DNA of 64,000 nt from Neoconidiobolus thromboides FSU 785 (GCA_025603075.1 MU626294.1:75895-139894), one strand, 5' to 3'. Positions 58,000 through 62,933 are shown, counted from the first letter of the stretch. A program made the numbers and translations. Notes: generated by a model not told the origin, from the sequence alone.

Positions 58000-59343
58000 A
58001 TGTCCACTTCAACATCTGAACAAATACCTCTACCAAAACTACATAATGGTAATTGTCAATTGATTAATGATACTATATATTATTTAGGAGGTAGTGAGTA
58101 TGATAACAATAATGAAGTTAAGGAATTAAATTCAGCTATTTATAAACTTAGATTGAATCAAAATTTACAATTGATGGAGGGTATTCGTTGGGAAAAAATA
58201 AAACCTGAAGGGAGAGCAATAGTTAGTAACCTTGGTAGAACAATAGTAATGAATAACAATCAAGAGATATGGCTTATTGGTGGTAATGGGGGTAAGAATG
58301 GAGAAATAATACGGGTTTATGATATTGAAAAGAATGAATGGAACTTGAATAAAAAACAAAATGCCCAGTTGAGCTCCATATTTAAAAAGGAAACTAGTTT
58401 ATTAGATACTAATTTAATTAAAGATAGCTCTAATAATTATTTATATTTATTTGGGGGCTATTTAGGTATTAATAATGCTCTAAAGCCAAATTTGAGTTTA
58501 GTCAAGTACTCTATTAAGCAGAAAGAATGGAGTAAAACCCCTTTTGATTTCCCAACTACATTAAATAGTGAATACAAATATCATAACTCAAATCGTTTAT
58601 TTACTGTAGGTGGTAATGATCTTAATATGAAAGCAATTAAGATGAATTATTTAAGTTTTATTCAACTAGACTTAAATCAAAGTAAATTGCAATTGACTGA
58701 TGGTGAATTACCACCTGCCTATTTAAGTAATCATTCTTTTATTATTATTGAAGATTATTTGTATTTAATTGGAGGTAACAATACCAGAATGAAAGACAAT
58801 TTATATCAATTAGATTTAAAAACATATCTTTGGAAGAAAATAAGTATATCTGGTTTATTACCATTTAATCATGGGTGTTTAATTGAATATAATAATCATT
58901 TATTTTATTTATTAGGTAAAGATAATAATAATAAAATCAATCAAAATATACAAATTATTTCTTTAAATCAAACTAAGCTAATTACCAACTATACTGTTGA
59001 GAGTACTATGCTAAATACTAATACTGCTAATAGTTTACCCTTAATATTAGGTATAGTTATACCAATAATTTTATTATTACTATTAGTGATAATATTATAT
59101 TATTATTATAATAATAAAAAAGAGAAATTCAATAAATTAGGAACTATAGAAAAAACGATTCCACAAGTAATTCAAGATTTACAATGGAATAGAACTTCAC
59201 TTAATATATCAACAATAAAAACAAATCATTTCAATACTTTAACTACTATCATTGATGACGATTTAATATGTCCTTATCAGGCTAATTTATTAATAAAAGA
59301 AGATAATCCATTATTAAAAGATTTAAGTTTAACTTATAAGTAA
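58000..59343 (+). CDS. Kelch-repeat protein with a single C-terminal transmembrane helix
   Basis: Repeated YYLGG/WLIGG/YLFGG/FTVGG/YLIGG with spaced Y...W; hydrophobic LILGIVIPIILLLLLVIILYYYY segment. Confidence 0.85.
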   Translation: MSTSTSEQIPLPKLHNGNCQLINDTIYYLGGSEYDNNNEVKELNSAIYKLRLNQNLQLMEGIRWEKIKPEGRAIVSNLGRTIVMNNNQEIWLIGGNGGKNGEIIRVYDIEKNEWNLNKKQNAQLSSIFKKETSLLDTNLIKDSSNNYLYLFGGYLGINNALKPNLSLVKYSIKQKEWSKTPFDFPTTLNSEYKYHNSNRLFTVGGNDLNMKAIKMNYLSFIQLDLNQSKLQLTDGELPPAYLSNHSFIIIEDYLYLIGGNNTRMKDNLYQLDLKTYLWKKISISGLLPFNHGCLIEYNNHLFYLLGKDNNNKINQNIQIISLNQTKLITNYTVESTMLNTNTANSLPLILGIVIPIILLLLLVIILYYYYNNKKEKFNKLGTIEKTIPQVIQDLQWNRTSLNISTIKTNHFNTLTTIIDDDLICPYQANLLIKEDNPLLKDLSLTYK

Positions 59344-59358
59344 TAACATTTTATTAAA

Positions 59359-62300
59359 TCAATCGTCATCTAATTCATCAAAGGCACCATCATCATCATC
59401 AAACTCATCAGCAAAGTTACTCATATTAAATTCCCTCGTTTGATTATTACTAGTATTAAGGAATGAAAATGGATTATTATTATTAATAATAGTGTTGTTA
59501 CTAAAGCCAAATGAAGTTTGAGTATTACTATTCTCATTCTTAGTATTAATAAATGAAAATTGAGTGTTATTAGCATTAGTGGTATTGGTAAATGAAAACT
59601 GAGTAGTAGTATTATCCTTATTAGCAAATGAAAATGGATTATTATTCCCACTATCATATGGAGTTTTTAATAAGCTTCTGTTAGATTCCCCATTAAAGTC
59701 TCTACCAATCGGAAATTGAATAAAATAATTATTCTCCTTCATTTTTTCCAATGTAATTTGTAATCTAAATTGAGTTGCTTTTAATTTTAAATCTAATTTT
59801 GGAAAATATTCTCTTTCAATATATTCAATTTGTTTAATTGCTTGGGTTTTATAACTCACTATTAATTTACCACCACATACCTAATTATTTGTTATCAATT
59901 TAATCTTATAATAATTAAAGAATATTACTATTAAAAAGGTATTTAATAACTCTGCTGATACTTCATTAGGTGCTACAATTAAACATCTAGATAACCATAA
60001 CCATGCATGATCAATCCCATAGGTATTATTGATTCCGTCTAAAATGATATTAAATATTAATATTAATATTATTATATCATTTTAATTATCATTTTACCTT
60101 TTTCATCAAACTGTAATAGAGCACAATATAAATAAAAGATAGCATTAATTCTCTTAATATAAACATCCAACTCTTCAAATCTATTATCTTTTTGAATATA
60201 ACCCATCCTTTTTTTATATATTTCAGGTTTTATTTCCTAATTAATTTAATTGCTAATTGATATATATTTTATATCTTAAATAATAATCTTTACCTCTGAA
60301 TACTTTGGTAAAGTATTGGGTAAAATATAAGGGCAACGTTTATAAAATCGAATATTTAACAAATTTCTTAATTCAAAGTTGTTTTTGCATAATAATAACA
60401 ACAATTTTGCTAATGGAAATGCCATACTTAAATTGGATATAATTTCTGTTTCTGTTTGTTTCTATTTAAATAAAATCAATTTTAACGTATAAATTATATA
60501 GAATTAAAATTTTGCTTACAATAGCTTGTTTCACCAAAAAATTTAATGTCCAAATATATAATGAATGGTGGCATAATTTAGCATCATTTAAAATGGCTTG
60601 AATGTTATTCAACTAAATAAATAAATTAAAATCAATTGAAACTCATAATACCAATAGTTAATCTACTTACCACTTCCATAACCACCGTTCTTGTGTTATT
60701 AATTTGACTTAATTTAGGTCGTATTTTTTTACGTATATCAAATCTTTTTTTCTTTAGTTCTATTTTACTATCTATATTTTGATTTAATTTTTTAAGTATA
60801 TGAATTCCTTTTTGATAATTAGCTGCTTCTAATTGCATTTCTTGAACACATGTTTGCTATTTGAATAGTAAAAAAATTAACGTTGTATTAGTATTATACA
60901 GTATATAATCTTACTTTAATAGTATATTCGCTAACCTCCTGTTGACTACTATCTTTAAGTTTACTAATATTCGTATTCTTGTCATCCAAATTTTTTGTTA
61001 GTAAAAGTTCAATCTCATCTTTAATTTCCTTAATAATTGATTGATTTGGCTTATTATTCGATTCAGTTTGTAAATATCTTAATAATTTAATTCCTTGTAT
61101 TTTATAGTCTTTTATTAATTTAGTTCCGCATTCCTTATCGCAAAGTCAATATTATATCATTACTAATTATATAACCTTACTTTTAACATCAATTTTAAAT
61201 ACGTCGAGTATTCAGAACCAATTAAGTCATTGCTAATAAATCTTAATAACCAAATCCAAATCTCTTGAGTCTCAAACCGATCATTTTTATCTTCAAATTC
61301 TATTAAGTTTTATTAGCATATTATTATAGAGGAATATATTGTTATTACCAGATATAATACCATCACCGGAAGTTAAAATTAATTTACAGTACAACTCAAA
61401 ATAAGGTAAACTATTTTCAATTAAAGCTGACTTGCTTTTCCATTCTCCGTAAATTGGCTCCTAATAAATATATTATTATTATCATTATTGTTACTATATG
61501 TACTTATTACATTTTTATTTTTATCAATTAAACTGGGTAGAATGATAGGGCATAAAAATAACAGTTTACTATACATGTAATTGAATAAGGTATCGTGTTG
61601 ATTTCCAAGCATCTTTAAACTTAATACACATAACTTGTTATTATTATTTAGCTGAATGCTTTCACTCTATCAGGGTATTAGTATATCATTTTTATTCTTC
61701 TATGATAAACTTACTATTGCTTCATCAACAAAATTAATGATAAGTAAATAATATAGATTGATAGAATAAAAATGTGCTTTTTTTAATAAGATATCTATAG
61801 AAGATACCTAAAAATAAAATTAAATAATTTTGATAATAAATTATGATTTAAAAAGTTACCATCATTTTAATTTCATTGAAATCATTGTCATTACTAGGAT
61901 TTTGTTTAATTTCATTAATCCAATCTTCAAATTCATCAAATAATGATAAAATTTCTTCTTTCTCTTCTTTATTTTCCAGTATATTATTCTTAATTTCAGC
62001 CTCCTTTTCCTTAATTCCCTTCATAAAATGATAAACCTTATTCAACTTTCCTGCCTCAAGTTTACTTTCTTCAATAACTGATGTCTAAACTTTTAAGAAA
62101 ATAAGTCTATATAAAAATAAAGCTAAACCCACCATAACCGAAGCTGCATTCTTCACTTCAAATAGATCCCAAACTCCACCTTTTGTTTTGACAAAAAACT
62201 TTTTACTCATATATTTAGTTACTTTCATCTCTCTTTCTTTTTTCCTTTTAGCCAAAATTTCTCTTTGAAGTTTTTCTTTTCTCTCAAGTTCTTCCACCAA

Positions 62301-62606
62301 AAATTGATTCTTAGCTCGTTCTTTCTCCTCTTTAATCTCCAATTCGATCTTTTTATTAAAATCATTCAAAATTTTATTGATGATATTTCTCATCTCGTTC
62401 TTAATTATCTTTTTCTTCAAATCATTTTTAATGGATTCTCTTTCAAGCTCTATTTTTTTTAAAACTCGTTCACGTTGTAAGACTAATGCAACACGATCCT
62501 CGGCCTCTTGAAGACCTATCCTGTATTATCTATTAACATGCGTTTTTGATTTTTTAGATTATTGAATTTACTTTTCACTCGTTTCTAAAGTTAATGGAAG
62601 TGTCAT
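59359..62606 (-). CDS. GLE1: Gle1 mRNA-export factor: coiled-coil N-terminus, duplicated Gle1 domain, FxF-repeat/acidic tail; about 12 exons
   Basis: AFPLAKLL...RFYKRCPYILP, YIKRINAIFYLYCALL, DHAWLWLSRCL and YKTQAIKQIEYIEREYFPKL...RLQITLE. Exon junctions from ATG 62606 to stop 59359 stay in frame where checked by hand. Confidence 0.85.
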
Positions 62607-62933
62607 GTTGATTCGAACTAATTTTTTTAGAAAAAATAAGTTTTGAACATAAAATAAATAAGCCTAATAGTATGCTTTTGATTGGTGCTTGGAGATAAGT
62701 TTAGTTTTTTTGGTTAAGCATGTAATTTTTGCCCAAATATTTATCCTATTAAATCGGTTATTATAGACTGCTATGCTTTTTATATAACTGGACGATTTTG
62801 TAATTTCAATATTGCTATATAATTATGACTTTACTAATTACATAGTAGCATTTAATTATAAAACCATCCACTTACATAAGAAAATTCACAATTAATTTTT
62901 TTAAATAATAGGGAGCGATGTGTTGAGCTATTT

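Follow-up and report, generated by a model that had tools for sequence, protein, structure and literature searches.

Evidence for an internally duplicated Gle1 domain in the GLE1 gene of the fungus Neoconidiobolus thromboides

At the nuclear pore, export factors are stripped from mRNA by a helicase whose essential activator, Gle1, normally has a single domain. Here we analyse the GLE1 gene of Neoconidiobolus thromboides (Entomophthorales) in a window of 64,000 nucleotides from strain FSU 785 (GCA_025603075.1 MU626294.1:75895-139894; all positions are counted from the first letter of this window). A single transcript of this gene carries two Gle1-like regions in tandem, hereafter termed block A (upstream) and block B (downstream). 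Sequence comparisons show that the two blocks are homologous, block B being the canonical Gle1 C-terminal domain and block A a strongly diverged copy without the pocket for inositol hexakisphosphate (IP6). Our best overall explanation, which we consider likely, combines a duplication within the gene, a working block B and a degenerate, non-activating block A. An earlier note, made from the DNA alone, had claimed an internally duplicated Gle1 domain and knew of no described double-domain Gle1; our full-text search of the literature likewise found no description of one, nor of any Gle1 in Conidiobolus.

One gene and one transcript

The gene lies on the minus strand, in very A+T-rich DNA, and has short introns. 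It was spliced by hand and every GT..AG boundary was checked; the resulting frame is open over 854 codons, from the ATG at 62606 to the stop codon at 59359-59361 (Table 1). For evidence at the RNA level, contigs of four RNA runs were aligned to 59200-62800. Run X1 comes from the same organism as the window, and runs X2-X4 come from a second organism, which is ~2% diverged. All 13 introns were confirmed by contigs from the two organisms, 12 of them as explicit joints and the remaining one (60039-60097) by pieces that adjoin in an X1 contig. This contig of 3951 nucleotides (nt; depth 350, zero mismatches) spans 62467 to 59200 with all model introns along its span removed; X2-X4 share its joints and also show intron 1 spliced. 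The four runs agree on a 48-nt intron at 62085-62132, thus 62133-62222 is coding and part of exon 2. The tail has no intron, the RNA contig being contiguous across 59200-59877.

Blocks A and B belong to one gene and one transcript, because RNA contigs splice across the joint between them. This joint (60856/60915) was found in all four runs, hence in both organisms, and is bridged by 186 letters in X1. It reads ...DSSQQEVSEYTIK/QTCVQEMQ (ending ...SEYTIK/QTCVQE) and is in frame. The in-frame joining proposed earlier (DSSQQE/QTCVQEMQ) therefore stands, but its donor does not: the true donor, GTAAGA, lies seven codons downstream of the proposed GTTAGC (after ...DSSQQE), which is unused. The RNA check that had been suggested for the splice model thus yields one contig carrying both blocks through all joints.

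Unspliced, exon 8 would reach a stop 20 codons past the donor first proposed, and an in-frame ATG stands 18 nt into exon 9. These features could be read as a pair of neighbouring genes, the first Gle1-like and closed by the TAA at 60894-60896, the second a GLE1 that begins with the ATG at 60838. We hold this to be very improbable. The genes would be only 55 bp apart, the 58-nt intron at that point is removed in all four RNA runs, the joint it leaves is in frame, and both blocks lie on one contig; the two-gene reading is refuted by this spliced RNA.

Block A forms a cassette whose 924 nt make up exactly 308 codons, and both of its ends are in phase 0: exon 2 ends and exon 9 starts in phase 0, and skipping from exon 2 to exon 9 would keep the frame. 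Exons 3-8 might thus be an alternative cassette whose omission yields a single-domain isoform, and splicing of the gene is indeed not uniform, intron 5 being unspliced in one X2 contig. We judge this improbable, since a 62133-60856 joint occurs in none of the four RNA runs and the constitutive joints are at full contig depth, although contigs drop rare variants, so that this counts as weak evidence.

Two copies of one domain

Comparison of the blocks with each other points to common descent. Their Smith-Waterman score is 146, whereas 1000 composition-preserving shuffles had a mean of 43 (standard deviation 6.9, z 14.9) and none reached it; blastp aligned them with 28% identity over 132 residues (E 2e-9). 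In a 6x6 matrix of exons, each cognate pair scored highest in its row, with z values ranging from 7.1 (E8/E14) down to 1.6 (E4/E10). E4 and E10 are both 93 nt long and encode 31 residues each, E5 ends in ...CPIILPSLIDKNKN and E11 in ...CPYILPNTLPKYSE, and further cognate peptides are FELYCKLI/FYLYCALL (E6/E12), IWIWLLRFI/AWLWLSRCL (E7/E13) and CGTKLIKDYK/CGGKLIVSYK (E8/E14). All the paired peptides listed in the earlier note are present in the sequence, and all fall in cognate exons. Its matching intron positions were also recovered: each block has five internal introns, their phases are 0,0,0,1,0 in both, and in an alignment guided by a hidden Markov model (HMM) 3 of the 5 positions fall at identical columns and the other 2 within 4 columns.

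Moreover, block A resembles the Gle1 proteins of other fungi. An independent HMM, made only from Entomophthora, Smittium and Polychytrium Gle1, matched it at residues 211-400 (19.6 bits), collinear with the domain of block B, and hhalign aligned block A with these three foreign sequences over 188 columns (P 3.7e-5). Scanned on its own, the C-terminal 60% of block A (residues 266-449, which are residues 1-184 of the public protein KAI9296643.1) matched the Pfam GLE1 profile PF07817 with 29.3 bits (E 6.7e-7, cutoff 24, profile positions 109-250). Two PF07817 matches had been expected and two were found, the other being the 179-bit match of block B. In a four-way alignment, the Cys and Pro of the CP..P motif, WxW and G..Y..Q..K are invariant, block A included. 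RNA, alignment statistics, Pfam and intron matches thus all speak for the duplication that had been claimed.

The coding sequence of block A is ~75% A+T and rich in N, K and I, and single exons of it give no Pfam match, as might be expected of a chance similarity between A+T-rich, low-complexity coding sequences. Such a coincidence, or else an artefact of the assembly, is in our view extremely improbable. None of the composition-preserving shuffles came up to the observed score, the Pfam match exceeds its curated cutoff, and the intron positions match; the copies are 25-33% identical and therefore beyond duplication by an assembler, and the region is present in independent RNA and DNA runs. 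Both readings are refuted by these observations.

Block B matches PF07817 over profile positions 5-249 of 250 (179.4 bits, cutoff 24), and the profile of the three foreign Gle1 domains finds it at residues 457-732 (202.7 bits). Using phmmer against solved Gle1 structures, we obtained E values of 1e-27 for human GLE1 (6B4F/7TBL), the best-scoring relative, 1e-25 for D. hansenii (9LT9) and 6e-20 for yeast (3PEU). To transfer residues, the yeast chain was numbered with an offset of 241 residues, which R374, the H337R mutation carried by 3PEU and V513/A516/I520 confirm. Block B is basic at six positions of the IP6 pocket: R491, K539, K543, R580, K583 and R584 stand at yeast K286, K333, H337, R374, K377 and K378; yeast K264 was mapped in neither block, the alignments stopping short of it. 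The triad that contacts the N-terminal domain (NTD) of Dbp5 is hydrophobic as well, with A716, F719 and I723 at yeast V513, A516 and I520. K264, K286, K333 and R374 are essentially invariant in fungi, and the yeast mutations V513D/A516D/I520D abolish Dbp5 stimulation (Lin et al. 2018, PMC5998080). By its sequence, block B is a canonical Gle1 C-terminal domain and most likely performs the standard IP6- and Dbp5-dependent job.

The corresponding pocket positions of block A are D244, S248, K281, F284 and L285, of which only K281 (yeast R374) is basic, that is 1 of the 5 that can be mapped, and no basic residue stands near the yeast K286 position in ungapped register. F284-L285 occupy the place of K583-R584 in block B and of K377-K378 in yeast; alignments and residue check agree that FL replaces the KK/KR pair, as first noticed, and the description of the upstream copy as an IP6-blind pseudo-domain is supported. 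No between-strain change is listed in the exon that holds F284-L285. The same note had stated that human K526/K527 binds IP6, which conflicts with the published work, where no IP6 binding was detected for human Gle1 (Lin et al. 2018, PMC5998080). At the Dbp5-NTD triad, block A has E412, D415 and L419, not all hydrophobic, with E412 and D415 at yeast V513 and A516, in a tentative alignment of a poorly conserved helix. About 15 residues are deleted before the LYC helix, and in a five-sequence tree the branch of block A measures 3.48 substitutions per site and that of block B 0.63 (~5.5-fold difference). Block A is thus strongly diverged and devoid of the IP6 pocket; most likely it neither binds IP6 nor activates Dbp5. 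A second helicase docking site is disfavoured as well, because E412 and D415 stand at the contact triad.

Block A would most likely retain a MIF4G-like helical fold, which structure prediction supports weakly. The best PDB matches that Foldseek returned for the AlphaFold2 (AF2) model of residues 266-449 were Gle1 C-terminal domains (probability 0.95-0.98, TM score 0.5, E only 0.16-0.4), and VIA-align put the model where it was expected, on residues 359-530 of the yeast protein (Z 6.7-7.4). MIF4G domains appear beside Gle1 among the structural matches (Z 6.6-8.4). In an AF2 model of the whole of KAI9296643.1, the predicted local distance difference test score (pLDDT) is <50 over most of block A.

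These features can be set against known proteins. The Gle1 proteins known so far have been described as having one domain of this kind (PMC5998080). As in the Gle1 of S. cerevisiae and C. thermophilum (3PEU, 3RRM, 6B4E, 6B4G), a coiled coil precedes a C-terminal Gle1 domain in the N. thromboides protein, and block B aligns over nearly the whole solved domain, keeping the six basic positions and the hydrophobic triad. The protein differs in having an extra, diverged domain of ~300 residues between the two, and a tail of FxF repeats with an acidic end after the canonical domain. Human GLE1 (6B4F, 7TBL) resembles block A in that it has no strongly basic pocket and binds no IP6 (PMC5998080); however, it still activates DDX19, its triad equivalents (G666/I669/Q673) are not acidic, and it has a single domain. 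The nearest relative found is the Gle1 model of Entomophthora muscae (KAJ9067801.1), from the same order, which is 44% identical to exon 11 and matches PF07817 with 96 bits. There, the coiled coil leads straight into a single Gle1 domain and block A is missing, although this comparison rests on one gene model, which is C-terminally truncated. Finally, DEAD-box regulators of the eIF4G type (MIF4G of eIF4G, CWC22, SLIP1, Paip1) share the general helical-repeat fold class predicted for block A, but have no sequence relationship to block A beyond the fold, and the acidic triad of block A argues against a helicase contact of the Gle1 mode.

Gene setting and the public protein model

The positions of the gene and its parts are collected in Table 1. 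The span given earlier for the feature (59730-61990) identified the right locus; the feature is slightly wider (59689-62084).

Table 1. Features of the GLE1 locus in the window
Feature	Position	Strand	Description
Whole GLE1 coding region	59359..62606	-	854 codons and a stop codon in 14 exons; the 13 introns, all GT..AG, measure 47-59 nt
Exons 1-2	62133..62606 (intron 62521-62571 inside)	-	N-terminal K/E-rich coiled-coil region, residues 1-141; from translation and RNA joints 62519/62571 and 62084/62133
Block A	60915..62084	-	Exons 3-8, residues 142-449; diverged Gle1-like domain
F284-L285 of block A	61553..61558	-	At the site of the basic pair that binds IP6, directly ahead of the conserved Cys-Pro; from alignments and residue check
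A/B intron	60857..60914	-	58 nt, phase 0; donor GTAAGA, TACTAAT branch-like motif, acceptor AAATAG
Block B	59689..60856	-	Exons 9-14 (first part of exon 14), residues 450-745; canonical Gle1 C-terminal domain by sequence
K583-R584 of block B	60336..60341	-	Equivalent to yeast K377-K378 of the IP6 pocket; from phmmer alignment to 3PEU chain B
C-terminal extension	59359..59688	-	N/T-rich stretch with four FSF repeats and one FGF repeat; acidic end; stop codon

An exhaustive phmmer search of 1.84 billion representative proteins with exon 11 as query returned five proteins. The best, 100% identical, was KAI9296643.1, annotated as 'GLE1-domain-containing protein' of Neoconidiobolus thromboides FSU 785. 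It covers residues 266-807 of the RNA-backed model and reads through both blocks. Its start is Met266, inside exon 5, so that exons 1-4 are missing, and with them the coiled coil as well as the initial 124 residues of block A; contrary to this start, exons 1-4 are joined to exon 5 by RNA. At the other end, a spurious intron removes part of the tail and the protein ends in another frame, where the RNA is contiguous. The RNA-backed model therefore corrects a public gene model that is N-terminally truncated and C-terminally mis-spliced. No second Gle1 of N. thromboides was among the proteins matched, and the gene described here is probably the only one of this fungus, because this exhaustive search gave one protein from it.

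Several features of the locus were noted in passing. The introns (59881-62571) fall into two size classes, 47-52 nt inside and before block A and 57-59 nt from the A/B intron through the fourth intron of block B; the fifth and last of block B measures 48 nt. Intron 5 (61461-61510) is kept in one X2 contig (record 6, unspliced over 61349-61666) and removed in X1, X3 and X4; its retention would meet a stop at about 61421. The tail is FG-like, with FSF at residues 764, 776, 789 and 819, FGF at residue 805 and an acidic end thereafter; in yeast and human, a separate protein, Nup42, supplies FG repeats to Gle1. A convergent gene for a Kelch-repeat/transmembrane protein (58000-59343, plus strand) has its stop 15 bp from the GLE1 stop codon. 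The 3951-nt X1 contig continues into this gene, and the 3' ends of the two genes probably overlap as transcripts.

Origin, constraint and possible roles of block A

Because the introns match between the blocks, a tandem duplication of the six-exon unit at the DNA level, and not a retrocopy, is indicated by the gene structure. In alignment scores, block A is closer to block B (146) than to the Gle1 proteins of Entomophthora, Smittium and Polychytrium (57-72); block B scores 223-354 against these foreign proteins, above its 146 against block A. Block A, block B and E. muscae group together in the five-sequence tree (support 92/92); the closeness of block A to block B and this grouping speak for an origin within the lineage. 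The tree fits a duplication before the split from Entomophthora about as well as one after it: the two placements of block A, beside block B only or beside block B together with E. muscae, differ by 1.0 in log-likelihood (p 0.23 in the approximately unbiased test).

The double-domain Gle1 is probably lineage-restricted. Of the 31-mers of block A, fractions of 0.87-0.92 are present in DNA runs of a further organism and 0.41-0.57 in RNA runs of organism B; fractions of 0.06-0.08 in organisms C and E may be simple A+T-rich words and were not counted as presence. Metagenome contigs searched with block A yielded no relative. A search of bacterial and archaeal contigs with exon 11 gave no match, which is uninformative for a fungal gene. 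Word-index homolog searches with the whole of KAI9296643.1, with its block B region and with a 4-sequence alignment returned only KAI9296643.1 itself, probably as low-complexity words dominate. The scope thus looks narrow, the arrangement having been seen so far only in N. thromboides and close relatives.

In the explanation that we favour, an ancestral unit of six exons encoding the Gle1 C-terminal domain would have been duplicated in tandem within the gene, introns included, and a new phase-0 intron would have joined the copies. One mRNA encodes a coiled coil, block A, block B and the FxF tail. On the cytoplasmic side of the pore, block B would bind IP6 in its basic pocket and stimulate the DEAD-box ATPase Dbp5. 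Situated between the coiled coil and this working domain, block A would most probably have a non-catalytic role, as a structural or docking module.

Selection was assessed by classifying 39 differences between the window and organism B. Block B holds 12 synonymous and 7 nonsynonymous changes, with 4 of 16 transitions nonsynonymous against 63% expected (P 0.002). The 6 synonymous and 7 nonsynonymous changes of block A include 6 nonsynonymous transitions of 12, against 64% expected (P 0.24). Constraint on block A appears weaker than on block B and is not demonstrated by these changes. An open frame as long as 308 codons would arise from composition alone with a probability of ~7e-15.

Certain results weigh against the explanation that we favour. 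The Pfam scan of its single exons gave no GLE1 match. Exon 3 resembles exon 9 weakly (z 2.6), and the first ~70 residues (exon 3) were assigned mainly by gene structure; the local profiles (foreign HMM and hhalign) extend the similarity back to residues 211-214. In the pocket, yeast K264 could not be mapped, and at the triad the register of E412/D415/L419 is tentative. The AF2 model of residues 266-449 is poor (pLDDT 57.6, predicted TM score 0.55), its Foldseek E values are those given above, and a VIA Z of ~7 is no better than that of other MIF4G-type domains and within the generic helical range. The between-strain changes, which are few, are indistinguishable from neutral drift (P 0.24). Nor is the open frame proof of a function of its own, because a stop there would remove the downstream block B.

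These points lead to the strongest alternative, namely that block A is a tolerated relic which has lost its activity and is drifting, selected at most against misfolding, and which stays open and spliced only because a stop or frameshift would destroy the canonical domain downstream. The long branch, the nonsynonymous changes that are not depleted, the loss of both the IP6 pocket and the Dbp5-NTD triad and the internal deletion are all in its favour. Yet a useless phase-0, whole-codon cassette could be lost or skipped harmlessly, and this one was kept with all its splice sites in two organisms; its hallmark core residues are retained, Pfam still detects it after the long branch, and a crude ratio of nonsynonymous to synonymous change (pN/pS) is ~0.25. 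We regard the relic as a serious possibility, though less probable than the explanation set out above. In our view, block A most likely folds without acting as an activator, and it would have a structural role or none.

It is rather unlikely, but conceivable, that block A works as a second platform. Mammalian eIF4G contacts one helicase, eIF4A, through two HEAT-type domains, which is a precedent for a two-domain regulator; by analogy, Dbp5 might be regulated through two sites, or block A might bind a Nup42-type partner or the protein's own FxF/acidic tail. With either of these partners, block A would take over the stabilising role that IP6 or Nup42 has for ordinary Gle1 domains. Were a second platform to exist, the last step of mRNA export would be rewired in this lineage.

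The double-domain Gle1 is thus a genuine variant of a well-known protein, though probably one restricted to its lineage. A canonical domain together with a paralogous copy that seems to have neither pocket nor contact triad would make a natural separation-of-function pair within one polypeptide. Such a pair could reveal which surfaces of Gle1 are dispensable while the fold persists, and could show whether a pseudo-activator domain scaffolds at the pore.

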